Sequence record: LR756500.1
DNA length: 41,940 nucleotides
Direction: 5' to 3' (one strand)
Shown here: positions 1-32,123 of the stretch, in pieces
How positions within the stretch are numbered: the first letter of the stretch is position 1
How the letters are laid out: every line of letters starts with the position of its first letter
Notes under the pieces: generated by a model
Databases searched by the model: none
The model's input: the letters and a program-made list of their open reading frames with translations, nothing else
What the model was told of the DNA's origin: nothing
Position numbers and translations under genes: made by a program

Positions 1-81
1 ATCTTTAATTAAAAAATCTGCATCTTTTTTAAAATTTTCACTTTCTATTATATAATCTTCTAATGATAATATATTTTTCAT
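1..81 (-). CDS. Partial ORF (runs off left edge), hypothetical protein with CTS-like N-terminus MKNILSLEDYIIES
   Basis: Manual translation from ATG at 81: MKNILSLEDYIIESENFKKDADFLIKD, open to window edge; late-promoter-like GATATATAA at 101-109 upstream. Not in the ORF track. Confidence 0.7.
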   Translation of the reverse strand, partial: MKNILSLEDYIIESENFKKDADFLIKD

Positions 82-92
82 TTTAGTTATTT

Positions 93-1997
93 TTATTTAA
101 TTATATATCCCATTTTATCCCATTCAAATTTATAGTTACCTGTTCCAAAACATCTATAATATCCTTTATCATGCATTATCTCCACTTCAGTCATCGATGG
201 ATCCGCTCCTTCTTTAACCAATATATCTTTTCTAAATTTAAATCTATTCTCTCTTATGCCATCTACTACCCACCAATAATTCAAACCAGTATGCCCTAAA
301 TAGTTAAAACCTAATTTTGTATATAAATTATCTTGCTCATTTGGACNNNNNNNNNNNNNNNNNNNNNNNNNTAGCCGTTCAGGTTTATACTCTTTTATAA
401 AGTGTTTGAATAATCTAGAAGCTCCACCTACAACTGTTGTATTTAATTTATTAGCAAATCTAGTTAATTCATAATCTCCTTCAATAGCCTTCTGTCCTAA
501 ATTCTTTCTCAATGATCCAAAGGTCATTAATAATACTAACTCATCATTGTAATATAAACCTAATTTAACAGCTGCATTTGCATTACCTTGCAAATGATTC
601 ATATTTAAAAACTCTCTACTATCACTAGAGGACGCCTTTTTAACTATACACTTTCTAGCATATATTTTATTCGGAGATAAATTTAATAAATTTAAAATTC
701 TAGATTTTACTATCTCTTGCTTATTCAACCATAAATCTTCCCATATATGCACTAACTTAACTCCCCTTTCTTTAGCTAATACTGTCTTATCTAAATGATA
801 ATCTTTAGGTTTATTAAATTCATTATGCCAATATACTCCATTATGTTCAAACCCTATTTTATAATCTTCAATATAAACATCTATCTCATTACCATTTAAA
901 ATTGTTCTATCTTTTTTTGTTTCTATATTTAAACTCTCTATAAACTCTTTAATCTCTTCTTCACTCTTACTTGTATAATTAACACTTGAATAAAGAGGAT
1001 TACATATTGTACATAATTCATTATTAAATTTATATCTTTGATGCAACAGATGTATATTTATATTTTTATAATCTTTGCATTCACTACAATAAAAATCTAA
1101 TGTTCCATTTTCATATACCTCTTTAATATTTAAACNNNNNNNNNNNNNNNNNNNNNNNNNNNNNNNNNNNNNNNNNNNNNNNNNNNNNNNNNNNNNNNNN
1201 NNNNNNNNNNNNNNNNNNNNNNNNNNNNNNNNNNNNNNNNNNNNNNNNNNNNNNNNNNNNNNNNNNNNNNNNNNNNNNNNNNNNNNNNNNNNNNNNNNNN
1301 NNNNNNNNNNNNNNNNNNNNNNNNNNNNNNNNNNNNNNNNNNNNNNNNNNNNNNNNNNNNNNNNNNNNNNNNNNNNNNNNNNNNNNNNNNNNNNNNNNNN
1401 NNNNNNNNNNNNNNNNNNNNNNNNNNNNNNNNNNNNNNNNNNNNNNNNNNNNNNNNNNNNNNNNNNNNNNNNNNNNNNNNNNNNNNNNNNNNNNNNNNNN
1501 NNNNNNNNNNNNNNNNNNNNNNNNNNNNNNNNNNNNNNNNNNNNNNNNNNNNNNNNNNNNNNNNNNNNNNNNNNNNNNNNNNNNNNNNNNNNNNNNNNNN
1601 NNNNNNNNNNNNNNNNNNNNNNNNNNNNGACTCCATATTTTTTAATACATGTTTCTTTCTTTTTTATTTCTATTTGTTTTCTTAATTCTGAATCATTAGT
1701 AGCACATTTAGTAGAACAATAATTACTATAGCCTTTATCTATTCCGGAAAAATTACATTTATTTATTTTACATACTCTACATATAGGTATATCTAAAGTA
1801 TTATTTAAAAAATGCCATATTTTTTGCATAAATACTAAATTATAATCTTTAGTATAATCTACTATTTTTAAATACAGATCTAAATATCTTTTTTTTACAC
1901 TTACTTCTTTTATGTAAGGACCTTTTAAATTCAATAATATATCTTTATAATCTTTCATATAAATAAAATGGTTCATATAATTAATTATATGAACCAT
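93..1997 (-). CDS. Hef-like putative homing endonuclease, copy 1 (Zn/KYG-repeat N-terminus + Vsr/DUF559-like nuclease + Mom-like GNAT domain)
   Basis: CxxC..YCSxxC, KKYGV, nuclease motif EIDVYIEDYKIGFEHNGVYWH, then IYARKC/NHLQG/YELTRF/LYTKLGF. True start may be ATG 1976 or 1958. N-runs 347-371 and 1136-1628. Confidence 0.8.
   Translation of the reverse strand: MVHIINYMNHFIYMKDYKDILLNLKGPYIKEVSVKKRYLDLYLKIVDYTKDYNLVFMQKIWHFLNNTLDIPICRVCKINKCNFSGIDKGYSNYCSTKCATNDSELRKQIEIKKKETCIKKYGVXXXXXXXXXXXXXXXXXXXXXXXXXXXXXXXXXXXXXXXXXXXXXXXXXXXXXXXXXXXXXXXXXXXXXXXXXXXXXXXXXXXXXXXXXXXXXXXXXXXXXXXXXXXXXXXXXXXXXXXXXXXXXXXXXXXXXXXXXXXXXXXXXXXXXXXXXXXXXXXXXXXXXLNIKEVYENGTLDFYCSECKDYKNINIHLLHQRYKFNNELCTICNPLYSSVNYTSKSEEEIKEFIESLNIETKKDRTILNGNEIDVYIEDYKIGFEHNGVYWHNEFNKPKDYHLDKTVLAKERGVKLVHIWEDLWLNKQEIVKSRILNLLNLSPNKIYARKCIVKKASSSDSREFLNMNHLQGNANAAVKLGLYYNDELVLLMTFGSLRKNLGQKAIEGDYELTRFANKLNTTVVGGASRLFKHFIKEYKPERLXXXXXXXXXPNEQDNLYTKLGFNYLGHTGLNYWWVVDGIRENRFKFRKDILVKEGADPSMTEVEIMHDKGYYRCFGTGNYKFEWDKMGYIIK
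101..109 (-). promoter_or_regulatory. Late-promoter-like motif GATATATAA
   Basis: Same motif recurs 5-35 nt upstream of many starts. Confidence 0.55.
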
Positions 1998-1999
1998 TT
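1966..1999. repeat. Perfect 34-bp palindrome AAATGGTTCATATAATTAATTATATGAACCATTT
   Basis: Base-by-base self-complementary about 1982/1983; contains two candidate start codons of Hef-like copy 1. Confidence 0.95.
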
Positions 2000-2026
2000 A
2001 TTAAATGTTTATGTTATTTTAAACCA

Positions 2027-2578: not shown

Positions 2579-2602
2579 AGTTTATTTCTTTTTTTTATTT
2601 AA

Positions 2603-2611
2603 TTATATATC
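2603..2611 (-). promoter_or_regulatory. Late-promoter-like motif GATATATAA (tail tube)
   Basis: Upstream of tube ATG, A-rich leader. Confidence 0.65.
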
Positions 2612-2673
2612 ACTTATTCAAAACAATTTTTTAGTTATTGAATACTTTTATTTATAATATATATTGAAAGTTT

Positions 2674-4314
2674 TTAGCTTTTTTTCCATTCAAATTTATA
2701 ATTTCCTGTTCCAAAACATCTATAACATCCTCTATCATGCATTATTTCCACTTCAGTCATCGAGGGATCTGCTCCTTCTTTAACCAATTTATCCTTTCTG
2801 AACTTAAACCTATTTTCTCGAATTCCATCTACCACCCACCAATAATTAAGTCCTGTATGCCCTATATATTTAAACCTTAATTTAGTATATAAATTATCTT
2901 GCTCATCAACCNNNNNNNNNNNNNNNNNNNNNNNNNNNNNNNNNNNNNNNNNNNNNNNNNNNNNNNNNNNNNNNNNNNNNNNNNNNNNNNNNNNNNNNNN
3001 NNNNNNNNNNNNNNNNNNNNNNNNNNNNNNNNNNNNNNNNNNNNNNNNNNNNNNNNNNNNNNNNNNNNNNNNNNNNNNNNNNNNNNNNNNNNNNNNNNNN
3101 NNNNNNNNNNNNNNNNNNNNNNNNNNNNNNNNNNNNNNNNNNNNNNNNNNNNNNNNNNNNNNNNNNNNNNNNNNNNNNNNNNNNNNNNNNNNNNNNNNNN
3201 NNNNNNNNNNNNNNNNNNNNNNNNNNNNNNNNNNNNNNNNNNNNNNNNNNNNNNNNNNNNNNNNNNNNNNNNNNNNNNNNNNNNNNNNNNNNNNNNNNNN
3301 NNNNNNNNNNNNNNNCACCAACTTAACTCCCTTTTCTTTAGCTAATGCTGTCTTATCTAAATGATAATCTTTAGGTTTATTGAATTCATTGTGCCAATAT
3401 ACTCCATTATGCTCAAAACCTAAATTATATAAAGGTATAAATATATCTATTTCATCTCCATTTAAAATAGTTCTATCTATTTTTGTTTCTATATTTAAAC
3501 TTTCTATAAATTCTCTAATTTCATTTTCTTTACCACTAGATCTATAACTATTTAATGGATTACAATTAAGACAAGGATTAATTGAATATACATTAATTCT
3601 TTGATGAAGTAAAAAAGAATTGATATTATAATTTTTATTACATTTATTACAAATAATATCTATAGTTCTATTTTTATTTATTTTAATTATATTTAAATGA
3701 TTATATTTGTTTTTAATATATGTTTCATATTTCTCAAATAATGTTTCTTTTCTTTTATCAGTTATTATTTTGTTTTGTTGTGGATGATTAACTCCATATA
3801 TTTTATTCCAAGTTTCTTTTCTATTTTTTAAAAAATCTTCAGTTTTAAATATACTATCTTTACCATATCGTTTAATATATGTTTCTTTTATTTTATTTTG
3901 AATTTTTTCATTTGATATAAAATTTTCACCATATTTTTCTTTTAATGTTTCTTTTCTTTTATTAATAAAATATTCACTTTGAAATAAATTTTCTGTTCCA
4001 TATTTTTCTTTTATTTTTTTATATCTATTATCTTTTACTAATTGATCATTTGCTGCACATTTTTTTGAACAATATCCAGTATAATTAAATTTATTTGGAT
4101 TAAATTTAGATTCTACTGAATTACATATTTTACAATTTGGAATTTTTAAAGTATTATTTAAAAAATGCCAAAGTTTACGAGAAAAATTAATATTTAATAA
4201 TTTCGTATATAAAATAATTTCTTGATATATTTCAGAAAAATTAATTTTTATTTTATATTCTGTTCTTTCTTTTCTAGAAAGTTTTAATATTTCTTTATTC
4301 ATTTTTCCATTCAA
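2674..4314 (-). CDS. Hef-like putative homing endonuclease, copy 2
   Basis: Same architecture: LWHFLNN..CKIC..YCSKKC, KYG repeats, FEHNGVYWH, C-terminus near-identical to copies 1, 4, 5. Likely start MNKE overlapping the stop of copy 3. N-run 2912-3315. Confidence 0.8.
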   Translation of the reverse strand: MNGKMNKEILKLSRKERTEYKIKINFSEIYQEIILYTKLLNINFSRKLWHFLNNTLKIPNCKICNSVESKFNPNKFNYTGYCSKKCAANDQLVKDNRYKKIKEKYGTENLFQSEYFINKRKETLKEKYGENFISNEKIQNKIKETYIKRYGKDSIFKTEDFLKNRKETWNKIYGVNHPQQNKIITDKRKETLFEKYETYIKNKYNHLNIIKINKNRTIDIICNKCNKNYNINSFLLHQRINVYSINPCLNCNPLNSYRSSGKENEIREFIESLNIETKIDRTILNGDEIDIFIPLYNLGFEHNGVYWHNEFNKPKDYHLDKTALAKEKGVKLVXXXXXXXXXXXXXXXXXXXXXXXXXXXXXXXXXXXXXXXXXXXXXXXXXXXXXXXXXXXXXXXXXXXXXXXXXXXXXXXXXXXXXXXXXXXXXXXXXXXXXXXXXXXXXXXXXXXXXXXXXXXXXXXXXXXXXXXVDEQDNLYTKLRFKYIGHTGLNYWWVVDGIRENRFKFRKDKLVKEGADPSMTEVEIMHDRGCYRCFGTGNYKFEWKKS

Positions 4315-6001
4315 ATTTTAATGAACCACTATCATATATTCTATAAATTTTTCTAGACATCATTATTTCATGTTCTGTCATATTAGAATCATAACCTTCT
4401 TTAACTAATACATCTTTCCTATAATTAAATCTATGTTTTTTAATTCCATCTACTACATACCAATAATTTGGAGGTGTATTATTTATAAAATTGAATCCTA
4501 ATTTATAATAAAGATTTCCTTTACTCCAACTCCTATCAGCATAACTAATTATTCTTATTGGATTATATTCTTTAATAAAATGTTTAAATAAGCGATCAGC
4601 ACCACCAATAACATTAGTATTTAAAATTGTACAGAATCTAAGTAATTCATACTCATTTTCAATTGAAATTTGTCCTAGTGCTTTTCTTAATACACTAAAT
4701 GTCATTAAACTAACTAATTCATTATTATAATATAGCCCATATTTTATTTTAGATGGAGTATATCCTTGTATGTGATTTTTTTCTAAGAAATCTTTTTCTT
4801 CTTTTGTATTAATTTCTTTTATATCACATTTTCTAGCATATATTTTATTATCAGATAAATTTAATATATTTTTTATTCTAGATTTAATTATATCTTTTTT
4901 ATAATACCAATCATCTTCATATATATGTATTAATTTTATATTATTATTTTCAGCTAATTCTGTTTTTTCTAAATGATAATCTTTATCCTTTTGGAGTTCA
5001 TTATGCCAATAAATTCCATTAAATTCAAATCCTATTTTTAAATCAGGTAAATATATATCTATTTCTTTACCATTTAAAAATATTCTTCTATTTAATTCTA
5101 ATGTATTATCATATATTTCACTTATAAATAATTTTAAACTATTTTCAGGTTTTGATAAATTTAATTGATTACAATTTGTGCATGTTTCCTCTTTATTATA
5201 TCTATATCTAAATAAATCTCTACTTATTTTATATGATTTTTTACAATTGTTGCACATAATAGTGAAAAAATCTCTTTCAATAAGAAGTATTTGTTTATCT
5301 GGATATGTTTTTATTATATTTTCTTTTCTTGTTTGTAGTATTTTATATTTAATATTTTCAACTTTATTTGGATTATCTTCTCCATATAGTTCTATCATTG
5401 TATTTTTAAATACATCTTTAACTATTTCCGATTGCCATGGATGATTAGTTCCATAACGTTCTTGGGATGTTTTTTTATATGACTCTTTCCAACTATCTAT
5501 ATTTTCTTTGAATGATTCTATTCTTTTTTCTTGTATCTCCTTTAATTGGGCTACATTTTCTACACCATAACGTTCTAAATTAGTATTCTTTAACTTATTT
5601 TGAATATCTTGTTTTTCTTCTTCGGATTTATTTAATTTAGTATTACTTAATTTATCTTTTATATTCTGTAATTTATTTGGATTATCAACTCCATAACGGT
5701 TTAGACTAGTTTTACGTCTAGATTCTTTCATTTTTTCCTTTAACTCTGGATCATTAACCATACATTCTTTTGAACAGTATCCTGTATATCCAATATCTAA
5801 ATTTTTAAAATTAGAATCTTTATTATTACATACTTTACACTTGGGAACTTCTTTTATTTTATATATGTAGTGCCATATTTTTTGTAAAAAACTGATATCT
5901 AAATCTAAATAACCATTTATCAATTCATACTTAATTGGATAATTTTTCTTTACACTGCGTTCTTGTAATAAATTTCCTTTTAATTCTATAATATTTTCCA
6001 T
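4295..6001 (-). CDS. Hef-like putative homing endonuclease, copy 3 (most divergent, fully visible)
   Basis: RYG repeats, EIDIYLPDLKIGFEFNGIYWH, NHIQG, YELLRFC, ISYADRSWSKGNLYYKLGF. Confidence 0.85.
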   Translation of the reverse strand: MENIIELKGNLLQERSVKKNYPIKYELINGYLDLDISFLQKIWHYIYKIKEVPKCKVCNNKDSNFKNLDIGYTGYCSKECMVNDPELKEKMKESRRKTSLNRYGVDNPNKLQNIKDKLSNTKLNKSEEEKQDIQNKLKNTNLERYGVENVAQLKEIQEKRIESFKENIDSWKESYKKTSQERYGTNHPWQSEIVKDVFKNTMIELYGEDNPNKVENIKYKILQTRKENIIKTYPDKQILLIERDFFTIMCNNCKKSYKISRDLFRYRYNKEETCTNCNQLNLSKPENSLKLFISEIYDNTLELNRRIFLNGKEIDIYLPDLKIGFEFNGIYWHNELQKDKDYHLEKTELAENNNIKLIHIYEDDWYYKKDIIKSRIKNILNLSDNKIYARKCDIKEINTKEEKDFLEKNHIQGYTPSKIKYGLYYNNELVSLMTFSVLRKALGQISIENEYELLRFCTILNTNVIGGADRLFKHFIKEYNPIRIISYADRSWSKGNLYYKLGFNFINNTPPNYWYVVDGIKKHRFNYRKDVLVKEGYDSNMTEHEIMMSRKIYRIYDSGSLKFEWKNE

Positions 6002-6145: not shown

Positions 6146-9100
6146 TTAGATAAACTCTCCAGTTGAAATAGCACCAGTCTTAAGAACAGTTGTTCTGTGA
6201 ACAAGAATTTCCAATCCCTTTACTGGTTCAACATATGTATCTAGTATACCTATATTTTTGTCTATTACATCAGGAGTATTATTTGTTTCATCCATAATGT
6301 TTCTAAAATCGTATACACCGTTATCTGCTTGAATTTGTCTCATAAAGTTATCAGCAAGTGTTTTAATTTCTAATCTAGTTTGTGCAGTATTAAATTCAAA
6401 AATAAAGTTTTTAAGAATTGCTGCAATACCATCTTGAATATAAATTAATACTTCTCTTACATGAATACTAGAAAGAGCAGACTTGATATTTTGTTGAGCT
6501 GTTTTATTACCAAAGATTACAATACCTGTACCGCTTTGGAAAATAATTGGGTTAAGTCCGAAAGGTTCAATCCAATCTCTATCTTCTTTAGATAAATTAT
6601 ATTCTAATCCAACTAAACCTCTTCCACCTACTACACCTCTTCTAGGACCTGCAACAATTGCCCAAGGTACTGAAGATGTATATTTTTCTACGAAGTTATT
6701 TGACACATAACCAGCAGGAGGAATAGCTAAATTTTTACCTCTATCTCTTACTAATACATAAGGAATATAAAAACCTGCATAATTTGATCCTTGTTCAACA
6801 CCTGGAAGAGTATATACTACTTTAGGATTTTTAGTTAAATCTCCACCTTCAGAAATCATTTTGGTATCAAGTAAACCTTGAGCATCTAAGAATGAAGGAT
6901 CTGTAGATTCTTTAAAATCTTTTATTGCTGGTGCATTAAGAATTGCAAATGCATTTTGTCTAGTTTTAGCTAAGTTACAAAGAACTGCTTTAGAACCTGA
7001 TTCAATACCTAATCCAAATGAATCAACAATATATCTAAAAGTTATATTATCTTTATCTATAAGAGCTTTATATAATTTTGTTCCAGATATAGTATCGTAT
7101 AAGATATTATTTTGTTGTTCCATAGAACCATCTGGTAAATGATAGCTAGTATAAGTAAATCCATTTAATGAAAATAAAGTATAATAATCAACCCAATCTC
7201 CAATTTTGCTATATACTTCAACTGAAGGAACAGCATTTACAGTTTTAAATAAAACTTTACCTACTGTTGTAACTGTTAATGTAGTAGCATTTTGTGAAAT
7301 TCTAACTATTCTAGTTAATCTAGAAGGACCTGTTGTACCACCATCATCGGCTACTATATATTTACCTACTGCTAATTTATTTGCATAATCAGAATGTACT
7401 TCAATAACATTACTTAATGATGTAGCAGTTGCAGGTATAGTTGAATTTAATGCTCCTTTTAAAGTTTGAATTACTAATGTATCTGTTGCAGCAGGAGTAT
7501 CAGTATTATCAAAAAATACTTCAGAGAAATTAAATGTTCCTTGAGTTACAAAACTTGAATCTTCGTATCCTTCAATTTTAGCAACTGGAATTAAATAATT
7601 TGTATCAGTAATAGCTCCACTTAAATATAAACCTCCATATACTATAGAATCAAATGTAGTTATAGTACTATCAATATATAATACTTCTGCAGCTTGTGGA
7701 TCTCCACTACCGTCTGCATCCCATATCATTTTATCTCCATCTGTAATTGTTCCTTGTTCAACGCTAGTATACATATCATTTGAATATGCTGCTATAATTG
7801 AATCAGCAGGTGCTGCAACTAAATCATCAACTAAAAAGTCAATATCTGTATAATTAACATATTTAAGATCATTTCCTGATAGAGCAGTATCAAATGATGT
7901 TTCAGTAATTCCTCCTACTACACTTACTTCAATTAATGCAGTTGTTGCAGTTACCTGTTTAGTAATAACTGGTACAAATTCTCCACTATCTGCTTGTAAA
8001 TAAGAACCTAATATTCTAGGAGATAATTCATTTTCTCTAAATTCTTCTTGTGCAACAATATTATAAAATGTTGCATTAGTTGAACTATCAACACTTATTA
8101 AAAGATTTCCAGATGATGCTAATACTGGATTTAATCCTGTACAATCATTTATAGCTTTTAATGTTACTGATTTCTTAGCATAATCTAAATTAGCTTTAAT
8201 TGTTTCTTTATAAGAAAGAAAATCTATTGTTGTAGGTTGTTCCCATTCTAAATTATGTCCAATTAAATCTAATCCACCATCTACTCCTGAAAGTAATTCA
8301 CCACTATCATATGCTTCTTTATTAATAGAACAAAATAATCCTGTTTTAGAAGTTTCTGTATTAATAATTGTTTCAATGAATAGATTATTACTATTTAAAT
8401 CAATAAAATCTGGAATTAAACATCCTGTATAAGTTGCAATATGATTTACTTCTGGTAAATTTAAGAATGCTTCAAGAGATGTATCAGTCGAATCTGCTAC
8501 TGATACTTTTCTTTTTATACCTCTAGATTTATCAAAATAACTAGCAAATAAAGGATCTGATGCTAATCTTTCATATGGAGTTGTATCAGTTGATTTAGGA
8601 CCAAAATCTCCTTCAATAACTATTACATCAATCATAAAATCTGATATATAATCATCTTTGTGTAAAAACTCAGGTATATTAGATATACCATACCATTCTT
8701 TAACAGTAATATCAAAACCACTTATAAAATCTGCTCTTTTAACAATTACAGTTAAAGGCTTTTTATCGATATTTGTTAAATTAAATAATTTATTTCCAGA
8801 TGAAGTAACATTTTTAATAAATGCTTCTGTATCAGGAAACCAAAATTTATCTCTATTGAAAAATCCTGCAAATAAATCTGATGATTTTGTATCATTAATT
8901 TGTGTTGCACTAGTTGAAAATACAACATCTTCAATTTTATCAGCATTTCCTTCTGAATCGTCATTATTTAATCTTAATAAATTAAGAGCTAAAATTGGAC
9001 CTCTTTCTAAAGCAGCTAAACATGTTCTGTGAAAATAAGAACCTTTTCTTTCTAAAGTTCTATCTATACTTCCATATACATCGCTAAAAAAGCCAGTATC

Positions 9101-9256
9101 TGATACATAAATAGGCGTATTGAAAGGGCCTTTCTTACTAAATCCAACGATCATTCTAATTTGCTCAGCAGGTATAGAAACTGTTTGAGATTTATCAAAC
9201 TCAAATCTATAGGTGCCGGAACTACGAAGCGATGCAATTTGTGGTGATATTGCCAT
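6146..9256 (-). CDS. Tail sheath protein (T4 gp18-like), 1036 aa
   Basis: N-terminal GTYRFEFDKS..IVGFSKKGPFNTP; C-terminal AGPRRG, GNKTAQ..SALSSIHVREVL, FIFEFN..TR, DETNNTPDVID. Confidence 0.95.
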   Translation of the reverse strand: MAISPQIASLRSSGTYRFEFDKSQTVSIPAEQIRMIVGFSKKGPFNTPIYVSDTGFFSDVYGSIDRTLERKGSYFHRTCLAALERGPILALNLLRLNNDDSEGNADKIEDVVFSTSATQINDTKSSDLFAGFFNRDKFWFPDTEAFIKNVTSSGNKLFNLTNIDKKPLTVIVKRADFISGFDITVKEWYGISNIPEFLHKDDYISDFMIDVIVIEGDFGPKSTDTTPYERLASDPLFASYFDKSRGIKRKVSVADSTDTSLEAFLNLPEVNHIATYTGCLIPDFIDLNSNNLFIETIINTETSKTGLFCSINKEAYDSGELLSGVDGGLDLIGHNLEWEQPTTIDFLSYKETIKANLDYAKKSVTLKAINDCTGLNPVLASSGNLLISVDSSTNATFYNIVAQEEFRENELSPRILGSYLQADSGEFVPVITKQVTATTALIEVSVVGGITETSFDTALSGNDLKYVNYTDIDFLVDDLVAAPADSIIAAYSNDMYTSVEQGTITDGDKMIWDADGSGDPQAAEVLYIDSTITTFDSIVYGGLYLSGAITDTNYLIPVAKIEGYEDSSFVTQGTFNFSEVFFDNTDTPAATDTLVIQTLKGALNSTIPATATSLSNVIEVHSDYANKLAVGKYIVADDGGTTGPSRLTRIVRISQNATTLTVTTVGKVLFKTVNAVPSVEVYSKIGDWVDYYTLFSLNGFTYTSYHLPDGSMEQQNNILYDTISGTKLYKALIDKDNITFRYIVDSFGLGIESGSKAVLCNLAKTRQNAFAILNAPAIKDFKESTDPSFLDAQGLLDTKMISEGGDLTKNPKVVYTLPGVEQGSNYAGFYIPYVLVRDRGKNLAIPPAGYVSNNFVEKYTSSVPWAIVAGPRRGVVGGRGLVGLEYNLSKEDRDWIEPFGLNPIIFQSGTGIVIFGNKTAQQNIKSALSSIHVREVLIYIQDGIAAILKNFIFEFNTAQTRLEIKTLADNFMRQIQADNGVYDFRNIMDETNNTPDVIDKNIGILDTYVEPVKGLEILVHRTTVLKTGAISTGEFI

Positions 9257-9330: not shown

Positions 9331-11178
9331 TTAATTTGTATTAATGTAATTAAATTTTAAATTACCTGTTCCAAAACATCTATAATATCCTTTATCATGC
9401 ATTATCTCCACTTCAGTCATTGATGGATCCGCTCCTTCTTTAACCAATTTATCCTTTCTGAACTTAAACCTATTTTCTCTTATGCCATCTACTACCCACC
9501 AATAACTAAGCTCTGAATGCCCTATATATTTAAAACCTAATTTTATATACAAATTATCTTGCTCATTTGATGTCCAATCACAATCAGTATAACTAATTAC
9601 TTGTTCTGGTTTGTATTCCTTTGTAAAATAATTAAACAAACGACTTGCACCTCCTGTAACAGATATATTCAATTTATTAGCAAACCTTAAAAGTTCATAT
9701 TCTCCTTCAACTGCCTTTTGTCCTAAATTCTTTCTTAATGATCCTAACGTCATTAATGATACTAATTCATTNNNNNNNNNNNNNNNNNNNNNAACAGCAG
9801 CATTAACATTACCTTGCAAATGGTTCCTATTTAAAAACTCTCGACTATCACTAGAGGACACCTCTTTAATTATACACTTTCTAGCATATATAGTTTCATT
9901 TAAATTTAATAGCCCTTTTATTCTTGACTTAATAATATCTTTTTTATAATTCCAATCATCTTCCCAAATATGCACCAACTTAACTCCTTTAGATTTAGCT
10001 AATAATGTTTTATTTAAATGATATTTATCATCTTTATATAATTCGGAATGCCAATAGACACCATCTACTTCAAATCCTACTTTATAATCTTCTATATAAA
10101 TATCTATTTCATTATCATTTAAAATGGTTCGATCTTTTTTTGTTTCTATATTTAAACTTTCTATAAATTCTCTAATTTCATTTTCTATTTTACTTTCAAA
10201 AGAATTTGAATAATATAAAGGTTCACAATTTAAACATGTATTTTTATTTATTAATGATCTTTTATGAAGTAAATAGCTTGTTATAGTATATTCTTTATTA
10301 CATTTATCGCATGTTATAGTAACATTTAAATTATTATCAATATTAATAATATTTAGAGTATTAAATTTATTTAAAATATCATTTTTATATTTATTTTTTA
10401 ATTTTGATTTATAAAAATTAGATTGAGTTATAAATTCAGTTNNNNNNNNNNNNNNNNNNNNNNCTTTTGATTTTTCTTTTATTTGTTCTGATTGTAATAC
10501 ATGATTAGTACCATATTTTTCTAAGCATGTTAATTCTCTTTTTTCTAAACTTTCTTTTGTTACATTATGAAACTGATTATATCTTTTAAAATTAGTTTCT
10601 TTTATTTTTTGTTTAATTTCATTATTTCTAAATACATTATCACTTCCATATTTTTCAGTTAAAGTTTTTATAGATTTTTGTTTAATTTTTATATTATCAA
10701 AAACATATTCAACTCCATAANNNNNNNNNNNNNNNNNNNNNNNNNNNNNNCTTATCTTTTTAACAGATAATATTTCTTCATTACCATATTTTTCTAAACA
10801 TGTTGATTTTCTTTTTTCTATTGCTAATTTACTTTGACTTGGATTTATTGTTCCATATCTTTCTAATGAAGTTTTTCTAATTTTATTTATAGATAATTGT
10901 TTTGAACATTCATTTGAACATGATGTATAACCAATAGAAATAGATCTAAATTTTTTTAAATTATTTTTACATATTTCACATATAGGTATTTCACATATAT
11001 CATTTAAATATAAATAAAGAATTTCTTTAAATTGTATTTTAGTAAAATTATATTTTGTAATAAAAATATTTAAATCATTTAAAATTTCTGGTTCAAATTT
11101 TTCGAACCATTTTTTATTCATTCTAGTTGATAAAAAACGATTATTTATTTTTATTATATGCAGTAATTTATTTTTCAT
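9331..11178 (-). CDS. Hef-like putative homing endonuclease, copy 4
   Basis: CEICK..CSNEC, multiple KYG repeats, FEVDGVYWH, NHLQG, YELLRFA, ISYTD..LYIKLGF. Confidence 0.85.
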   Translation of the reverse strand: MKNKLLHIIKINNRFLSTRMNKKWFEKFEPEILNDLNIFITKYNFTKIQFKEILYLYLNDICEIPICEICKNNLKKFRSISIGYTSCSNECSKQLSINKIRKTSLERYGTINPSQSKLAIEKRKSTCLEKYGNEEILSVKKIXXXXXXXXXXXYGVEYVFDNIKIKQKSIKTLTEKYGSDNVFRNNEIKQKIKETNFKRYNQFHNVTKESLEKRELTCLEKYGTNHVLQSEQIKEKSKXXXXXXXXTEFITQSNFYKSKLKNKYKNDILNKFNTLNIINIDNNLNVTITCDKCNKEYTITSYLLHKRSLINKNTCLNCEPLYYSNSFESKIENEIREFIESLNIETKKDRTILNDNEIDIYIEDYKVGFEVDGVYWHSELYKDDKYHLNKTLLAKSKGVKLVHIWEDDWNYKKDIIKSRIKGLLNLNETIYARKCIIKEVSSSDSREFLNRNHLQGNVNAAVXXXXXXXNELVSLMTLGSLRKNLGQKAVEGEYELLRFANKLNISVTGGASRLFNYFTKEYKPEQVISYTDCDWTSNEQDNLYIKLGFKYIGHSELSYWWVVDGIRENRFKFRKDKLVKEGADPSMTEVEIMHDKGYYRCFGTGNLKFNYINTN

Positions 11179-19739: not shown

Positions 19740-21434
19740 TTACTTTTTATTATATTTTTCTTGATCTTCAGGTCTCCAAAATTCTTGTTTATATGTATCA
19801 CTCCATAATTTAATTGCTTTTTGTACTCCATCAGGATCTTCTGTTTTTAAATATGGATGAACATCTAATATCATTTTAACTAAAAGATTAGCCCATTCCA
19901 TTTGTTTTAATCTAATTGAATATTTTACAACATTTATTAATTCTTTAGAAGTAATTTTTTTTCTACTTCTTTTATAAGCAATTGCAGACATCATAGCTTG
20001 AGCAACATTTGCATTAAGTGATTGTTTATCTTTTCCTCCACCTACATTAAATGTTAAAGGAGCACTAGGTGGAATTTTTGCTTTATCTGGATCAGAGTAT
20101 ACATAATCTATATCTTTATCATCCATATGACCAGCTATAGTATTTTTAAATGCTATAAACATCATAGCAGGAGTTTTGCCTATTGTAGTTTCTAATGCAT
20201 CTAATATATCTTGATCGGTTAATTCTTTTCCTTCTGTTTTAGCTATTTTTTCATACCATGCATATTTTTTTGCTGCTTCAACCCAAGATCTTGGAGAAGC
20301 CCATACTGGAGATTCTTCTCCAATAATATATCTATGAAAATATTTTTCATTAAATTTAATAAAAGCTAGCATATGGCTACTTAATAAAATTTCTTTAGCT
20401 ATTTGTATATCAGAATCTGGATCTTTTTCTTTTGTTTTAAGCCATTTTTCCCATGAAGCAGGATCTGCTACTAAATTAACATGATGAAATCTATTTCCTA
20501 ATGCAGAACCTAAATCTTCAACATCTGCATTTTCTTCTCCACTAGATCTATTTCCAGCAGATATTATAACCCATTCGCTAGGAAGTTCATAATCACCTGT
20601 TTTTAATCCACCTCCTAATTTTCTATCTAAAACAAATTGTAATGAAGCTTTTATTACAGGAATAGCAGCTCTATTCATTTCATCGAAAAATATAATTCCA
20701 CCTTTTCCGTTTTCTCCATTTGTTGTTGGAAATACTAATGGAGTAGCATATCTGGTTCTACCTACTTTAACTATTTTACCAGTAGCATCTGGCATATCAA
20801 CATATACAATTTCAGGTACTCCGACAAAATCTGTTGGATCTTTTAATGATAAATTAAATATAATTAAATCTTTTCCATATTCATCTGCAATTTGTTTAAC
20901 TATATCAGTTTTACCAACACCTGGAGCTCCCCATATAAATAATGGTGATTTTTTTTCTACTGCATATCTTAAATTCATTTTAAGACCTTTAACATCTACA
21001 TTTTTAACTTCTTTACTTGGATGACTTAAATCTAATGGATTTTCTTCACCAACTATTCCTTCTTCCAAATTTTTAATATTAATATCTGGAACATTTTTAT
21101 TTTTTAATGTATTACAATAATATTCTATTCCCCATTTTTTAAGTTGTCCTTTTTTTTGTAAAAATAATAAATTATATGACCAAGCATGTTTTCCAAATTT
21201 TTCAATAAACCAATTTGTTATTTTAGTCCATATTGCATTAAATAATCCTTCATTTAATTCATCATTTAATTCATCATTATTATTAAAATTAGAATATATT
21301 TCATCTAATTCATCATAAGCTGAATTAAATTCAGGTTCAGGTTCAGCTTTATTTACAATTTTATTAAATTTATATTCTGCCAATAAATTAATAGAAATAT
21401 GTTCAGAATACTGCGTAAAATTTTTGAAACTCAT
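19740..21434 (-). CDS. MoxR/dynein-related AAA+ ATPase
   Basis: Walker A WGAPGVGKT, Walker B IFFDEMNRA, sensor SAGN, ALGNRF, SPRSW; adjacent to vWA partner. Confidence 0.92.
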   Translation of the reverse strand: MSFKNFTQYSEHISINLLAEYKFNKIVNKAEPEPEFNSAYDELDEIYSNFNNNDELNDELNEGLFNAIWTKITNWFIEKFGKHAWSYNLLFLQKKGQLKKWGIEYYCNTLKNKNVPDINIKNLEEGIVGEENPLDLSHPSKEVKNVDVKGLKMNLRYAVEKKSPLFIWGAPGVGKTDIVKQIADEYGKDLIIFNLSLKDPTDFVGVPEIVYVDMPDATGKIVKVGRTRYATPLVFPTTNGENGKGGIIFFDEMNRAAIPVIKASLQFVLDRKLGGGLKTGDYELPSEWVIISAGNRSSGEENADVEDLGSALGNRFHHVNLVADPASWEKWLKTKEKDPDSDIQIAKEILLSSHMLAFIKFNEKYFHRYIIGEESPVWASPRSWVEAAKKYAWYEKIAKTEGKELTDQDILDALETTIGKTPAMMFIAFKNTIAGHMDDKDIDYVYSDPDKAKIPPSAPLTFNVGGGKDKQSLNANVAQAMMSAIAYKRSRKKITSKELINVVKYSIRLKQMEWANLLVKMILDVHPYLKTEDPDGVQKAIKLWSDTYKQEFWRPEDQEKYNKK

Positions 21435-21448: not shown

Positions 21449-21457
21449 TTATATATT
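21449..21457 (-). promoter_or_regulatory. AATATATAA, AAA+/vWA/terS operon
   Basis: Overlaps gp14-like stop, upstream of ATG 21434. Confidence 0.55.
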
Positions 21458-26075: not shown

Positions 26076-26837
26076 TTATACATTATTAACTACGTTTTGA
26101 ATCTCATAAATCGCGGCCAATAGTGAAATCTGTGGATCAATTACCTGTTGACGAGTAGATTGATATTTATTTACAGTTATAATAATTTGTGGAAGATATT
26201 TTAATTTATCAGGTTTTTCTTGTTGTAAATATTCAATAAATTCTGTACCTAAAGATGCTAATACATCATCAACTCTATTAGAATAATTAGAAACTAAATA
26301 TTGATAATTTTTAACAGGATCTATATTATCGAAAATTAATTGAAATATATCTTTATAAACGCTATTAAATTTTTTAATATCATCTATTGATATTTTTTCT
26401 TTACCTTCATTTTTATATCCTTGTAAAGTATTTAGCATACTTCTAAAGTCAGGAAATTTTCTTTTAACTAATTCTAATAATGCTTCTTTATCTATAATTA
26501 AATTTTCAGCTTTACATATATTCCACAATCTAATTAAATAACCTTTCATTAATTCAGATTCTTCTTCTTTAGAAAAATCAAAATTAATTAATTCAAATCT
26601 AGATTTAACTGCTTCATCTATTTTATTAATATAATTACTAGTAGCAATAAATCTAGAATTAGCATGAAATTCTTCCATAGATGCTTTAAATGCTTTAAAA
26701 AATTGCTGTGAAGCACCATCACAATTATGAGTACATATTCCATTTTCTGTTAAAAATGTATGATTTTTATATACTGTTAAATTTAAAACTCTTCCTTTAT
26801 CTATTTTTTTAATTTGTTTTATTTTAAATGTTTTCAT
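26076..26837 (-). CDS. Clamp loader (gp44/RFC-like) C-terminal part, preceded by split-intein IntC (aa 1-38)
   Basis: MKTFKIKQIKK..NLTV..NHTFLTENGICTHN|CDGAS, then RFIATSN..KIDEAVKSRF, FPDFRS. Confidence 0.92.
   Translation of the reverse strand: MKTFKIKQIKKIDKGRVLNLTVYKNHTFLTENGICTHNCDGASQQFFKAFKASMEEFHANSRFIATSNYINKIDEAVKSRFELINFDFSKEEESELMKGYLIRLWNICKAENLIIDKEALLELVKRKFPDFRSMLNTLQGYKNEGKEKISIDDIKKFNSVYKDIFQLIFDNIDPVKNYQYLVSNYSNRVDDVLASLGTEFIEYLQQEKPDKLKYLPQIIITVNKYQSTRQQVIDPQISLLAAIYEIQNVVNNV
26724..26837 (-). mobile_element. Split intein C-fragment (38 aa, His-Asn end, +1 Cys)
   Basis: Canonical block F/G, Lys-rich. Confidence 0.9.
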
Positions 26838-28155
26838 TTATTAAAAAATTTTTGATTTTATTATTTACTTTTTCTGGAATTTTAAAATTATTTTTTTTAA
26901 CAATATTATCGAAATGTATATATGTATAATTTTTAAAAAAAAATTCATCAATTCTTTTATATGTAAAAAAATTTAAGTTACACCAATAAATTAAACTTTC
27001 TTCTTTTAAAATATTAATATCTTTATTCATATAAATTGATGGTTTTATTTCATATACAACTTTATTTTTATAATCTATAAAATCTATTATATAAATTTTT
27101 TCAATATTATTATAAGTATAAGGTATTCTTAAATCTTCATATTTTAAATCTAAATTTTCATTTAAAATAAAAAAACATAATTCCCAAGAACTTCTAAATT
27201 TATACTCAATATTATTGTGTCTTAAATAAATATCTAATTTTGTCCAATAATTATTAATATTAGGTTTAAATCTATTTTCTGATATAGCCTTCTTAAGAGC
27301 AATACTTTGTTTTTTCCTTCTTTCATCGGTAACATAAAATTTAAAATTTTTATGATAACATTTTAATGAACAGGTATATTGTGATTTTGTTTTTCCTTTT
27401 CCAAATAATTGTTTATATTCATATTCTTTATCACATATTTTACATATTTTAATATTTTCATGATAATATGTTTTTACAAAATCTAAAAATTTATCTTTAT
27501 ATAGTTTTTTATAAAAAAATCTTTTATTTCTTAAATTCTTTTTAATATAAAAACAAGTATCCTCACTTAAATAATAATCTTTTAAATCAATTTTCTTTTT
27601 ATTATAAAAATAATTTAATCTAAAATCATTAAACATATTAATGGGATTTTCAACTTTGTTTAATATGAAATTTTTATATAAAATATGTTTTACCTTTTTA
27701 ATATCTTTATATTCATTTAATAATTTATAACTTATTAAATTTAAATATGAATAATCATAAGGTTGAAAATTATCAATTATATGTTCATTTTTAAAAAAAT
27801 ATCTTTTATATTTTTGACAATAATCATCATTACATTTATAAATTCTTCTATTTTTTAAATCTTTAATCTTTATATTATTATTACATATTTTACATTTTAC
27901 AATCTTTTCATCATTTTTTTCCTTTTTTAATTTATTACGTTTTTTTGCACATTCTATTAAAAATGTTTTTTGACATTTTTCATTACAACATATTTCTTTA
28001 TATCCTGTAAAAAAACCTCTAAATTTTGCATTAGATCCACAATATTTACACTTAGGTATATTTATATTATTTTCTTTTAAATATGCTTCTTCAATAGAAG
28101 CATATTTAAATCTAAATTTATTAATTAAACTTCTATTATAACTACTATAACCCAT
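26824..28155 (-). CDS. Free-standing TnsA-like PD-(D/E)xK endonuclease between the clamp-loader halves
   Basis: Several CxxC Zn motifs, FRSSWE..IPY..YIIDFID..YEIKP; own TATAAATA promoter. Confidence 0.8.
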   Translation of the reverse strand: MGYSSYNRSLINKFRFKYASIEEAYLKENNINIPKCKYCGSNAKFRGFFTGYKEICCNEKCQKTFLIECAKKRNKLKKEKNDEKIVKCKICNNNIKIKDLKNRRIYKCNDDYCQKYKRYFFKNEHIIDNFQPYDYSYLNLISYKLLNEYKDIKKVKHILYKNFILNKVENPINMFNDFRLNYFYNKKKIDLKDYYLSEDTCFYIKKNLRNKRFFYKKLYKDKFLDFVKTYYHENIKICKICDKEYEYKQLFGKGKTKSQYTCSLKCYHKNFKFYVTDERRKKQSIALKKAISENRFKPNINNYWTKLDIYLRHNNIEYKFRSSWELCFFILNENLDLKYEDLRIPYTYNNIEKIYIIDFIDYKNKVVYEIKPSIYMNKDINILKEESLIYWCNLNFFTYKRIDEFFFKNYTYIHFDNIVKKNNFKIPEKVNNKIKNFLINENI

Positions 28156-28176: not shown

Positions 28177-28194
28177 CCATTATATTTTTAAATG

Positions 28195-28821
28195 TTATAA
28201 AAAACATATTATATTATCCGTCAAACTTAGTCCATTTTTTATAGATTTTTCCATAATTTTACTATCCTTTGTGAGAATCATAAAGGGATGATTCTCAGTA
28301 ACATTGATAGTTTTTCCATCTTCTAATTCTATTTCATATAAATCATCAATTTTATCAGAAATTATTTCACATGTATCATTTTCTAATTTTCCAGTTTCAG
28401 TATTCATAGAAATACAATCATATATAGTATTTTTTTCTAAATTTTTTAATTTTATAGATTTCCAATTATTAAGTTTACCTATTCTTACCTTTTCATCTTC
28501 TTGTAAACATTCGTCTAGAATAACAACTTTAAGTTTTCCAGGTTCATCCATTATTGATCTAGTAGAACAAAAATCTGTTATTTTTTCTCTAACAACATCT
28601 ACTGATGTTTCTTTAGATGAATTAATATAAATATATGGATATCCAAATTCTTTAACAATAGCTTTAGCAACAGAAGTTTTACCTAAACCCGGACTTCCAT
28701 AAAATAAATAATTTTGAAGTTGACCAGATTTGAATTTTTCCTTTAAAAAATTTGGAACTACTATGTCATCTATTTTTGTTGGACGATATTTTTCTGTCCA
28801 TAATATTTCAGATATCTTCAT
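28195..28821 (-). CDS. Clamp loader (gp44/RFC-like) N-terminal part (aa 1-104) + split-intein IntN (aa 105-208)
   Basis: LWTEKYRP, Walker A GSPGLGKT, Walker B VILDE|C, intein block B VTENHPF. Confidence 0.92.
   Translation of the reverse strand: MKISEILWTEKYRPTKIDDIVVPNFLKEKFKSGQLQNYLFYGSPGLGKTSVAKAIVKEFGYPYIYINSSKETSVDVVREKITDFCSTRSIMDEPGKLKVVILDECLQEDEKVRIGKLNNWKSIKLKNLEKNTIYDCISMNTETGKLENDTCEIISDKIDDLYEIELEDGKTINVTENHPFMILTKDSKIMEKSIKNGLSLTDNIICFL
28198..28509 (-). mobile_element. Split intein N-fragment of clamp loader (104 aa)
   Basis: CLQEDEKV block A, LYEIELEDGKTINVTENHPF block B. Confidence 0.9.
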
Positions 28822-29199: not shown

Positions 29200-29261
29200 T
29201 TATTTGAATTTTAAATTATTAATATTAATATAATTATATGCAAAAATAATTTTTTGTTTCA

Positions 29262-29960: not shown

Positions 29961-30045
29961 AATATAANNNNNNNNNNNNNNNNNNNNNTTTAATTTATAT
30001 GCAAAATATTTAATTTGTTACATGGAATATATATTAAAATAGCTG

Positions 30046-30840
30046 ATGAAATACAAATTTGAAAAAAATAGATTTTATAGAAAAGTTTTAGTTGAACCTT
30101 TAACAACTATAACTGTTAAAGAAATTAATATGGATAATTTAGATAGAAAACGAAAAGTAATTGATATTCCTAAAAGAGAACCAATAAGACAAGAAGTAGA
30201 TAGAGCTAATAGAGCAAAATTTTCAAATACTTATAAAAAAATTGATACATTAAATCCAATATTTAAAGATAAAACAATATTTATAATAGGTGGAGGTCCT
30301 TCTTTATTAAATTTCGATTTTTCTGTGTTAAAAGATAAATTTGTTATTGCAATTAATAAAGCATTTTTAACATATCCGAATGCTGATGTATTATATTGGA
30401 CTGATTCAAGATTTTATAAGTGGTTTGAAACTGATATAAATAAATTTAAAGGTTTAAAAATTACTAATAAGCCAAGACCCGCTGTTAATGATATTATTAA
30501 TTTAAGAGATACTGGAAGGGATGGATTAGAATTAAAACCTGATGGAATAAGACATGGAAATAATTCTGGTTATGCTGCAATTAATGTTGCAATACACTTG
30601 GGCGCAAAGAATATAATTTTATTAGGTTATGATATGGAATCAAAGGGAAATAAAACTCATTTTCATGATGGATATCAAATTAAACATAATCCTAGAATAT
30701 ATGAAAATAATATGATGCCTCATTTTAATACATTAATTAAACCTTTAGAAGAAAAAGGTGTTAAAGTATGGAATATAAATAAAGATTCTAAATTAAGATG
30801 TTTTCCTTTTTGCACACTATTGGAAGCACTAAATTTTTAA
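30046..30840 (+). CDS. DUF115/MptE-like (sialyltransferase-related Rossmann fold) protein
   Basis: IFIIGGGPSL, IAINKA, NSGYAAINVAIHLGAKNIILLGYDM, HFHDGY. Confidence 0.8.
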   Translation: MKYKFEKNRFYRKVLVEPLTTITVKEINMDNLDRKRKVIDIPKREPIRQEVDRANRAKFSNTYKKIDTLNPIFKDKTIFIIGGGPSLLNFDFSVLKDKFVIAINKAFLTYPNADVLYWTDSRFYKWFETDINKFKGLKITNKPRPAVNDIINLRDTGRDGLELKPDGIRHGNNSGYAAINVAIHLGAKNIILLGYDMESKGNKTHFHDGYQIKHNPRIYENNMMPHFNTLIKPLEEKGVKVWNINKDSKLRCFPFCTLLEALNF

Positions 30841-31334
30841 CGATTTCTTTTGGTATATTTAATGTAATTTTGATGTTCTTCTTTTAATAGATTTTTGCAA
30901 TATAACGTAAAATTTACTGATGATTCTATTACTTTTTTATCAATTTTAAATCTCACCTTATAGTATGCGTGTCNNNNNNNNNNNNNNNNNNNNNATTTAG
31001 GTTTTCTTTCATACATATTTATAATAATATCTTTATTGCATATAGCACAATACCATTCTATATTATCATAATCTACTTCTATATCACTATACGTAGTTAT
31101 TTTATTTTGATAAGGATTAAACCAATATTTTCTATTTCCTTTATGTAAAGATTCCATATCGGCTATACGAAAAAGTATATGAAGAGTATGATCATCTTCA
31201 GATACTTTTTTTATGAATTTATTATTTTTTAAAAGATCTTTTTGAACTTTAGGTAATGGATCTGTTAATATACCATATTTTCTATGAAACCATCCAAAAT
31301 TTAATCTTTTAATTTTATATAATCTGTTATACAT
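30837..31334 (-). CDS. Hypothetical protein with possible Zn ribbon
   Basis: WYCAIC; second pair may be in N-run 30974-30994. Confidence 0.65.
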   Translation of the reverse strand: MYNRLYKIKRLNFGWFHRKYGILTDPLPKVQKDLLKNNKFIKKVSEDDHTLHILFRIADMESLHKGNRKYWFNPYQNKITTYSDIEVDYDNIEWYCAICNKDIIINMYERKPKXXXXXXXXHAYYKVRFKIDKKVIESSVNFTLYCKNLLKEEHQNYIKYTKRNR

Positions 31335-32123
31335 TTACCAACGACTAAAAAATTTTCTTCTTCTTGTATTTTTACCTGTTAAATCTCTACCTCCTGGACC
31401 TATTACAGCATTTTGTTTTCTTGTATCTTCAGCTTTTTTTGCAACTTGATATGTAGCTACATGTTTTTCTTTACTAAATCCTTGTTGTATATTTTCAAGT
31501 CTTTTCTTTTCTAATTCTCTATATTTTTTTTCTTCTTCAGCTTCAAATCCTTTTTCTATATCCTCAAGTCTTTTTTTTTCAAGTTCTTTAATTGCTTTTT
31601 CGTCTTCTTTCATTTTAATATTAACTTCTTTTGTATCAGATGCAATAATTCCCATCTTTTCAGTATTTTGTCTCATAAGTTCTTTTCTTTCTTCTCCTTC
31701 TGCAATTTTAACTCTTTCGTTATTTACTCTTAATTGACCTTTTAATCTAGAAATTCTTTGAACTTTTCTTAAATATTCATTACTGCCTGCAATTTCTAAA
31801 GCTTCTGCTTCATATTCTTTAGCATTATCTTCTAATGCATCTAATTTAGTTTGAAGTAATGCCCACATTCTTTCAATATTAGGTTTTTTTCCTTCACTGA
31901 AAGCTCTTTCAATTTGTCTTCTTTGATCAATTTCTTGTCTTGCTGCTTTTAATCTTAATAAATTAGCTTTTTCTTGAAGATTTTTAACTTTAGGAGCATA
32001 AATAAACCAGTCACTTATTCTACCTTCATTTAATTGATTATTAAATAAATCAATTAAAGTATTTATTAACTCTTCATTAAAAGATTCTTCTATATGATTT
32101 TCATATGTTTCTAAAAACTTCAT
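31335..32123 (-). CDS. Coiled-coil protein with CTS-like leader MKFLETYENHIEES
   Basis: E/K/R-rich heptads, LNEG motif, late-promoter-like motif at 32139-32147. Confidence 0.7.
   Translation of the reverse strand: MKFLETYENHIEESFNEELINTLIDLFNNQLNEGRISDWFIYAPKVKNLQEKANLLRLKAARQEIDQRRQIERAFSEGKKPNIERMWALLQTKLDALEDNAKEYEAEALEIAGSNEYLRKVQRISRLKGQLRVNNERVKIAEGEERKELMRQNTEKMGIIASDTKEVNIKMKEDEKAIKELEKKRLEDIEKGFEAEEEKKYRELEKKRLENIQQGFSKEKHVATYQVAKKAEDTRKQNAVIGPGGRDLTGKNTRRRKFFSRW

Follow-up and report, generated by a model that had tools for sequence, protein, structure and literature searches.

In bacteriophage T4, the internal proteins IPII and IPIII begin MKTYQEFIAE|A, and the ten residues before the cut form the capsid targeting sequence (CTS), which the gp21 prohead protease removes (Mullaney and Black 1996; reviewed in PMC9026906). 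Mutagenesis of IPIII places targeting mainly in residues 4 and 7 and processing in residues 8 and 10, with Asp at position 10 blocking processing and leaving targeting intact, and CTS-like sequences have been noted in close T-even relatives (PMC9026906). This article concerns a 13-residue leader that opens many proteins encoded in a 41,940-nucleotide stretch of the phage sequence record LR756500.1 (the window, by which the whole of that stretch is meant) and elsewhere in the same genome. Judged from sequence, the leader is probably a 13-residue variant of the T4-type capsid-targeting and processing propeptide, which would load 10–35 diverse proteins into the prohead core across a large uncultured clade of phages. 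The CTS concept is established for T4, and the huge-phage variant with its larger set of cargo appears to be new; within the limits of the searchable library, no paper was found that ties the CTS to huge phages or quotes the leader strings.

Several other routes into the phage head are described. The N-terminal propeptides of T4 IPI, Alt and gp24 are 10–19 residues long and are cut after [L/I]-x-E, and Alt is cut at both ends; the leader resembles these propeptides in its shortness and its hydrophobic-x-Glu end, while the sequences otherwise differ. The Dar antirestriction proteins of phage P1 and the ejection proteins of P22 are packed in the head and delivered to the host, as is proposed here for leader proteins, but they are loaded via specific partners and have no common cleavable N-terminal tag. 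Propeptides of the phiKZ and SPN3US type are cleaved at (S/A/G)-x-E. In phiKZ, 201phi2-1 and SPN3US, ejection and inner-body proteins carry long, protein-specific propeptides, mostly of more than 100 residues (PMC5694885). As would be the case here, these are giant phages in which many head proteins are loaded via propeptides removed by a gp21-related protease that cuts after Glu; unlike the leader proteins, theirs have no common short consensus, and they belong to a different clade. A propeptide of the phiKZ/SPN3US type (about 80 to more than 100 residues) was considered for the present leader and set aside, the leader being 13 residues long, common to all its carriers and furnished with Leu, Ile or Val at P3. 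A Sec, Tat or lipoprotein signal peptide, in which a basic N-region precedes a hydrophobic core of about ten or more residues, was likewise rejected, because the leader has no hydrophobic stretch and charge is carried by six positions of its 13-residue consensus (K, K, E, E, E, E).

The leader in the window and across the genome

The leader genes of the window, all on the minus strand, are as follows; bit scores are from a position-specific scoring matrix (PSSM) described below, and ORF stands for open reading frame.

43–81, minus: leader MKNILSLEDYIIE, codons 1–13 of an ORF that runs off the window start and is 132 amino acids (aa) long in the full genome; PSSM 26 bits
16648–16686, minus: leader of a 303-aa ORFan protein (ORF 15775–16686)
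15778–15804, minus: C-terminal tail NATEFGFFD of the same 303-aa protein
17433–17471, minus: leader of a 257-aa leucine-rich-repeat (LRR) protein, partly masked (ORF 16698–17471), ending ...FDN
19695–19733, minus: leader MKYIKSYENFIFE of a 491-aa phrog_1314-family protein (ORF 18258–19733)
21402–21434, minus: degenerate leader MSFKNFTQYSE of a 564-aa AAA (MoxR-like) ATPase (ORF 19740–21434)
21246–21257, minus: candidate second cleavage site LNE|G in the MoxR-like ATPase
32085–32123, minus: leader MKFLETYENHIEE of a 262-aa coiled-coil protein with a basic C-terminus (ORF 31335–32123)
32022–32033, minus: second LNE|G, in the coiled-coil protein

The first-pass annotation had reported five leaders from the letters of the window, and each lies where it was claimed, at the first ATG of a minus-strand ORF (81, 16686, 17471, 19733 and 32123). 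Its weaker sixth instance, in the ATPase, also stands: at locus L068 of another phage, a homologue that is 30% identical to the ATPase over 384 residues begins with a canonical leader, MKKIYNFKEFVNES..VDEG, which supports both the degenerate leader and the reading of LNE|G as a second site, and the LNEG noted in the last two proteins was found in both. It was also borne out that replication and tail genes of the window have no leader, none being present on its sheath, tube, fibre, terminase, clamp-loader or FEN-like ORFs. Even a loose core of the motif, [YFL][EKQ][DNE][FHY][ILV]xE, occurs just six times in the six frames of the window, five of them at ORF residue 7.

Genome-wide counts refer to 667 non-overlapping ORFs of LR756500.1, of which about 35 begin MKYI(K/L)EYEEF(L/I/V)xE. 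A scan of N-termini with a PSSM made from the leaders, proposed in the first-pass annotation, gave a strong N-terminal excess: with a matrix built from 18 strict instances and its Met column ignored for the comparison, 31 of 667 N-termini reach 10 bits or more as against three of 129,817 internal positions, and at 20 bits or more the figures are 24 and none. The consensus is MK-(Y/H)-I-K-x-(Y/F)-E-x-F-(L/I/V)-x-E followed by a small residue, and its most conserved columns are Tyr7 (17 of 18 seeds), Phe10 (16 of 18 seeds), [LIV]11 and Glu13; the seed pattern itself required [LIVM] at position 11 and Glu at 13, so that the conservation of these two among the seeds is not independent. Among the roughly 35 wider matches, Glu13 is missing from about ten. 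Leader genes form arrays at 11.7–17, 181–182, 198–202, 255–271, 313–323 and 455 kb of the genome.

The constraint acts on the leader peptide. Pairwise nucleotide identity between leader genes is 0.70 over the 39 leader bases, 0.39 over the 39 bases upstream and 0.36 downstream; conservation is higher at codon positions 1 and 2 than at position 3 (0.76 versus 0.60); and the choice of synonymous codons is no less varied than genome usage would lead one to expect, with some enrichment of G/C-ending codons in codons 2–6.

What follows the leader is diverse. The mature parts fall into 25 groups unrelated by BLAST, 24 of which are singletons, and the remaining one is a linked group of 11 made up of LRR paralogues and proteins with a common C-terminal tail. 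The earlier description of the carriers as unrelated is therefore mostly right, with the qualification that the 303-aa protein and the LRR protein of the window, the latter one of six leader-carrying LRR paralogues, both belong to this group of 11. A search of 24 leader proteins against PHROGs and NCBIfam returned phrog_1314, an ATPase family, LRR similarity, a weak ATP-grasp match and two further weak, uninformative matches; the LRR similarity to type III effector models holds at the level of the repeats (123 bits against a cut-off of 600). The isoelectric point of leader proteins is close to the genome average (median 6.7 versus 6.5), so that as a class they are not T4-like small basic internal proteins. 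For the 303-aa protein a homologue search returned the protein itself and nothing else, and in a protein atlas the 303-aa and coiled-coil proteins gave query-relative TM scores below 0.5 throughout, from low-confidence models.

Two carriers illustrate how the leader sits on its protein. The MoxR-like ATPase has an N-terminal extension of 140 residues. In the 491-aa protein the phrog_1314 match begins at residue 25, and homologues in podophages of about 70–80 kb, in Bacillus phage G and in other jumbo phages match from residue 20–78 onwards, with one weak exception from residue 5; phrog_1314 is annotated 'HNH endonuclease', and some GenBank homologues are called Zn-dependent hydrolase or metalloprotease. 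Residues ~180–225 of this protein, between its N- and C-terminal parts, hold about 24 Gly-Gln dipeptides flanked by CxxC pairs.

A second common motif lies at the extreme C-terminus, where ...KYEHLxNADDFG(F/L/M)(F/L/I)(DN)-stop ends 12 proteins. Their positions are 15778–15804 in the window and 11706, 12631, 13446, 14298, 15898, 17016, 125087, 181730, 313912, 332545 and 411169 in the genome (loci L001, L003, L004, L006, L007 and L008), and the masked LRR protein of the window, of which just the final ...FDN is visible (16701–16709), may provide a 13th. Ten of the 12 tails belong to the 35 leader ORFs; the exceptions are the protein at 17016, with a weak leader of 7.2 bits, and the LRR paralogue at 411169, which has no leader. 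The tail could be a second sorting or processing signal, or a docking peptide.

The window is bases 182061–224000 of LR756500.1 in unchanged orientation. That record is an unannotated entry of 462,018 bp labelled 'uncultured phage', and the tail-sheath ORF of the window (6146–9256, minus strand) is 100% identical to it. The window has 17–30% GC. Nearest relatives by tblastn include Lak phages and four other metagenomic phage genomes, 634–735 kb (five records); the 'Mahaphage' clade comprises the largest phage genomes together with the Lak phages (PMC7162821). The offset between window and record is 182060 at three places, namely base 81, the sheath gene and the ORF 18258–19733, which indicates that the runs of N before base 19733 (six listed by the scan, plus 16711–16934 and 17212–17320) keep their length. 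Masking covers the central and C-terminal parts of the LRR protein, and ahead of 16686 it sets in 25 nt upstream of the ATG; ORFs stay open through the runs, and no run contains a leader. At the base-81 junction the ORF reads across, and an independent contig has an equal spacing of 411 nt to the next leader gene.

Likeness to T4, head genes and related phages

Like the T4 CTS, the leader is a short and portable sequence at the extreme N-terminus of otherwise unrelated proteins. It has a Met-Lys start and a core of aromatic-x-(E/D)-Phe-(Ile/Leu/Val)-x-Glu followed by Ala or Ser. With a three-residue offset after Met-Lys, T4 IPII/IPIII scores 22.3 bits on the genome PSSM and 15.2 bits on a PSSM made from IMG/VR leaders alone, a value that 15 of 129,923 windows of LR756500.1 reach. 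In this register the IPIII residues 4 (Tyr), 7 (Phe), 8 and 10 align with leader Tyr7, Phe10, [LIV]11 and Glu13, so that the residues mapped by mutagenesis are conserved, and the small residue after Glu13 has the look of a cleavage-site signature. By the T4 precedent, variants with Asp13 would be targeted and remain uncut at that site. In T4 ipII and ipIII (NC_000866 65689–65727 and 66386–66424; locus L029), the nine bases before the ATG, AGGAAACAT, are in frame and give (R)KH-MKTYQEFIAE, a register equal to the 13-residue consensus MKHIKLFEEFVNE. The T4 CTS could have arisen by a three-codon shift of the start, or the agreement could be a coincidence with the ribosome-binding site.

The phage also resembles T4 in its head genes, which supply a protease of the gp21 family, a scaffold and a capsid protein like gp23. 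Immediately beyond the right end of the window come the genes for this gp23-like protein (phrog_138), for a protein of 632 aa and for a portal protein like gp20 (phrog_213). The 632-aa gene and the late-promoter-like boxes found before leader genes of the window are listed here.

L005 2725–4623, minus: predicted 632-aa protease–scaffold fusion, between the gp20-like portal and gp23-like capsid genes
101–108, minus: ATATATAA box, 27 nt upstream of the ATG at 81
21449–21456, minus: ATATATAA box before the MoxR-like ATPase gene
32139–32146, minus: ATATATAA box before the gene for the coiled-coil protein at 31335–32123

Residues 21–197 of the 632-aa protein match the phrog_207 head maturation protease (E 1.4e-40), T4 gp21 finds it by tblastn at 5.6e-9, and its sole PDB match is T4 gp21 (entry 5JBL). 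The residues aligned with T4 gp21 His85 and Ser140, which we take to be the catalytic pair, are kept. The ~430 C-terminal residues are scaffold-like and of low complexity; protease and scaffold are thus one fused polypeptide, unlike in T4. A complex prediction for the protease domain (residues 1–215) with residues 1–40 of the 303-aa protein gave a score of 0.00, which counts neither for nor against binding. In a MAFFT alignment of the capsid protein with T4 gp23, the N-terminal region is homologous and has no confidently assignable cleavage site. A second, short, diverged paralogue of the prohead protease is encoded in the nearest IMG/VR record (135-aa ORF at G001:C1:417586-417879); LR756500.1 too has a second protease match, and contigs G011 and G012 likewise have a diverged protease paralogue, as has been reported in SPN3US and its relatives (PMC5694885).

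The ATATATAA box lies 13–48 nt (mostly 20–35) upstream of the sheath, tube, capsid, protease and fibre genes, and it precedes nine of the 35 leader ORFs as against 52 of the 632 others (Fisher p = 0.003). That several leader genes follow a late-promoter motif, as the first-pass annotation had noted, is confirmed for the ORFs starting at 81 and 32123 and for the ATPase at 21434. In the relatives LR756504 and LR756502 (loci L036–L048), many leader genes are preceded by TAATATATA(C/G); its similarity to ATATATAA here and to the T4 late promoter TATAAATA suggests a late-promoter box conserved in the clade. A candidate ORF for a late factor like T4 gp55 lies near the head genes, by reading of its translation.

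The leader recurs in other phages. Scanned with an exact degenerate DNA pattern, IMG/VR yields 18 stretches that carry it, and with a pattern made on the consensus MKxIxx[YF]ExF[LIVMF]NE at least 119. Among the matches listed, 160 of 178 PSSM hits lie no more than 20 codons from an upstream stop, the median ORF is 135 aa long and the leader consensus is MKHIK(L/T)FExF(I/V/L)NE. Position 14, unfixed by the DNA pattern and slightly biased by the PSSM cut-off, is Ala, Ser or Gly in 123 of these 178 leaders (69%), against ~20% at positions 15–18. Strict matches number 5–23 in each of five genomes counted, with none in the reversed control, and LR756500.1 has 20; two metagenomic huge phages have eight and five, all at ORF starts. 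Each of ten large leader-bearing IMG/VR contigs (130–482 kb), and contig G003 besides, encodes a phrog_207 protease in an ORF of 606–747 aa, which is evidently the same predicted protease–scaffold fusion. In seven of nine leader-bearing genomes, an acidic leader protein of 112–130 aa that begins MKIIKTFEEF..., MKTIKTFEQFINS..., MKIYNTFESFIKE|A or similar is encoded between the portal and protease genes, the position held in T4 by the core proteins gp67 and gp68. These acidic proteins matched no PHROG family, so that gene position is all that they have in common with gp67 and gp68.

The 202 distinct leader ORFs of other phages fall into 147 clusters with a median length of 146 aa, and nine of the 202 have a homologue in LR756500.1. 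Where homologues exist, the leader persists while the mature part falls to ~32% identity, as in the pair MKFLKSYEEFLNE|NLILE|GGSYGHLNHPFED here and MNKLFTYEEFLTE...LFE|GGAYGHLTHPFED elsewhere; one small domain bears the leader in another phage and is leaderless in LR756500.1. No homologue of the phrog_1314-family protein was found in the five leader-bearing genomes searched. The same leader amino acids are written with different codons in other phages of ~22–40% GC. Locus L094 (IMGVR_UViG_3300031566_000207) holds 15 tandem leader ORFs within 15 kb, and contig G008 a run of ten near-identical genes for proteins starting MKRI(S/I/V)NYKTFINE at a spacing of ~0.9 kb; both arrays call to mind the hypervariable loci that encode internal proteins in T-even phages.

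The likeness to the T4 CTS that the first-pass annotation had drawn is thus upheld on several grounds: a short N-terminal peptide with the mapped targeting residues, the processing residues in the form [ILV]-x-E with a small residue after them, modular placement on folds that are leaderless elsewhere, a gp21-family protease–scaffold encoded in the genome, a leader gene inside the head operon of relatives, and a late-type promoter at some leader genes.

A proposed propeptide for head cargo and the alternatives

If the leader is a capsid-targeting propeptide, leader proteins would bind the prohead scaffolding core late in infection, a core built by the gp21-like protease fused to its long coiled-coil scaffold, and the capsid shell would close round the core and the proteins bound to it. 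The protease would then cut behind the Glu that ends the leader, and some proteins would be cut again at a downstream L-x-E|G. Mature proteins would thus be set free within the head, and at least a part of them would leave with the DNA when the next cell is infected. The LNE|G sites may parallel multi-site processing, and the processing of Alt at both ends may bear on the C-terminal tail. Being short and portable, the tag could have been acquired by proteins as different as the LRR proteins, the AAA ATPase and its phrog_1314-family neighbour, the ATP-grasp protein and many ORFans. Binding to the core, cleavage after Glu13 and presence in the virion are what we infer for the leader proteins, as is, by analogy with T4, ejection of cargo into the host with the DNA. 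The first-pass claim that the motif predicts the injected proteome is too strong, because the T4 core also holds proteins that gp21 cuts to short fragments; that it predicts proteins targeted to the prohead core is defensible.

A number of points weigh against this interpretation. Packaging, cleavage and ejection all rest on inference; the leader is 13 residues long where the T4 CTS has ten, with three extra after Met-Lys; the carriers number about 35 (5% of ORFs) here as against a handful in T4; and position 13 is Asp, or is not acidic at all, in several variants. Most leader genes have no ATATATAA box of their own, though many sit in tandem arrays. The exact 13-residue DNA pattern is absent from the huge phages LR745206, LR756501 and Lak-A1, and allowing one mismatch yields a few plausible leader variants in LR745206 and LR756501; it is absent as well from PTm1, pT24, PAU, PA5oct and S-B68, cultured phages with a protease of the same family. 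The clade is uncultured, and for the IMG/VR group, too, the nearest relatives in GenBank are metagenomic huge phages. The carriers themselves also depart from T4, for they include large enzymes and LRR proteins whereas T4 carriers are small basic internal proteins, and a subset, unlike T4 CTS carriers, adds a conserved C-terminal tail, with the function of the leader here being read from sequence.

An explanation close to the preferred one, though unlikely, keeps the prohead core as the destination and makes most carriers accessory parts of the core or scaffold, degraded and expelled at maturation like T4 gp67, gp68 and gp22. The small acidic leader protein at the gp67/gp68 position in seven of nine relatives fits it, as do the shortness of many leader ORFs (the median of 146 aa in other phages) and the T4 precedent, in which the protease cuts core proteins into short fragments (PMC5694885). 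It sits poorly with the many carriers that have enzyme-like or binding domains and no obvious scaffold role (LRR, AAA ATPase, phrog_1314-family, ATP-grasp, nucleotidyltransferase-like), and with a repertoire that varies greatly among related phages, as that of T4 internal proteins does; the nine shared homologues among 202 leader ORFs and the five genomes without the phrog_1314-family protein are cases in point. That the leader is instead a signal with no relation to the capsid, such as a degron, a tag for a regulatory protease, an address to some other site in the cell or a common helix that binds a hub protein of phage or host, is also improbable. The leader proteins are known from genes alone, ~35 members per genome are unusually many for head cargo, the terminal Glu is missing in some variants and cultured phages of the same protease family do not have the motif, all of which would suit such a signal; yet it leaves unexplained why the leader agrees residue by residue with the mapped T4 CTS, why a small residue follows Glu13, why the protease–scaffold fusion co-occurs with the leader without exception and why a leader gene lies inside the head operon, and a secretion signal in particular is at odds with the want of a hydrophobic core.

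Conservation might also reside in the nucleic acid, as a common translation-initiation or messenger RNA element or as a recombination cassette that moves genes, for which the promoter-early stem-loops of T4 are a precedent. Tandem arrays of leader genes and the G/C-ending codons of codons 2–6 agree with this, but conservation runs from the ATG to codon 13 and no further, the upstream 39 nt being at the background of 0.39; synonymous codons vary within the genome and across phages of ~22–40% GC; and codon positions 1 and 2 exceed position 3 in identity, which together make the idea very improbable. Least probable of all is descent of the carriers from one ancestral gene, with the leader its best-kept remnant: although 11 of the 35 are linked by LRR repeats or the common tail, 24 are BLAST singletons with different recognizable folds, homologues of these folds elsewhere have no leader, and identity falls from 70% to background exactly after codon 13.

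The capsid-targeting propeptide may belong to something wider. On a more tentative extension, which we hold to be possible and rather doubtful, the leader and the T4 CTS are two forms of a single ancient address for head cargo, which a gp21-type protease–scaffold core reads across much of the T4 superfamily, and the C-terminal tail ...NADDFGFFDN is a second sorting or processing signal.

Neighbouring genes and meaning for huge phages

At least seven paralogous ORFs of 537–634 aa, two of them cut by the end of the sequence, occur in the window (93–1997, 2674–4314, 4295–6001, 9331–11178 and 41065–41940) and in L005 (1–924 and 7551–9164). Their N-termini are rich in Cys, 'YGV.NP' units recur along them and the C-terminal half is conserved; several are partly masked. 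They look like a large family of homing-endonuclease-like mobile genes. From translations, the large terminase subunit seems to be in three pieces with an endonuclease-like ORF between them (window 11272–12084, 12176–14062, 14062–15162 and 15189–15764), and a clamp-loader-like gene seems to be split by a 443-aa Cys-rich ORF (26076–26837, 26824–28155 and 28195–28821), its first piece perhaps with an intein-like tail. Two ORFs resemble TnpB, of the IS200/IS605-type RNA-guided nuclease family, by eye (window 40017–40886, plus strand; L005 11497–12732, minus strand), and one of them lies between the head and replication genes.

Huge phages are known almost exclusively from metagenomes, and no function has been assigned to the majority of their genes. 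A head-loading tag would list candidate virion-internal and injected proteins for a whole uncultured clade, and the injected candidates would be the first actors in the host, such as anti-defence and takeover factors. The internal-protein genes of T4 are hypervariable arms-race genes. If the more tentative reading of one ancient address holds, the proteins that many uncultured phages of large and huge size package and eject could be read directly from sequence, at 10–35 proteins per genome and hundreds of unrelated families, with a cargo that is probably rich in host-takeover and anti-defence factors. The tag would also show the T4 packaging address to be older and wider than the T-even phages, and it could give a second portable tag for loading foreign proteins into capsids.

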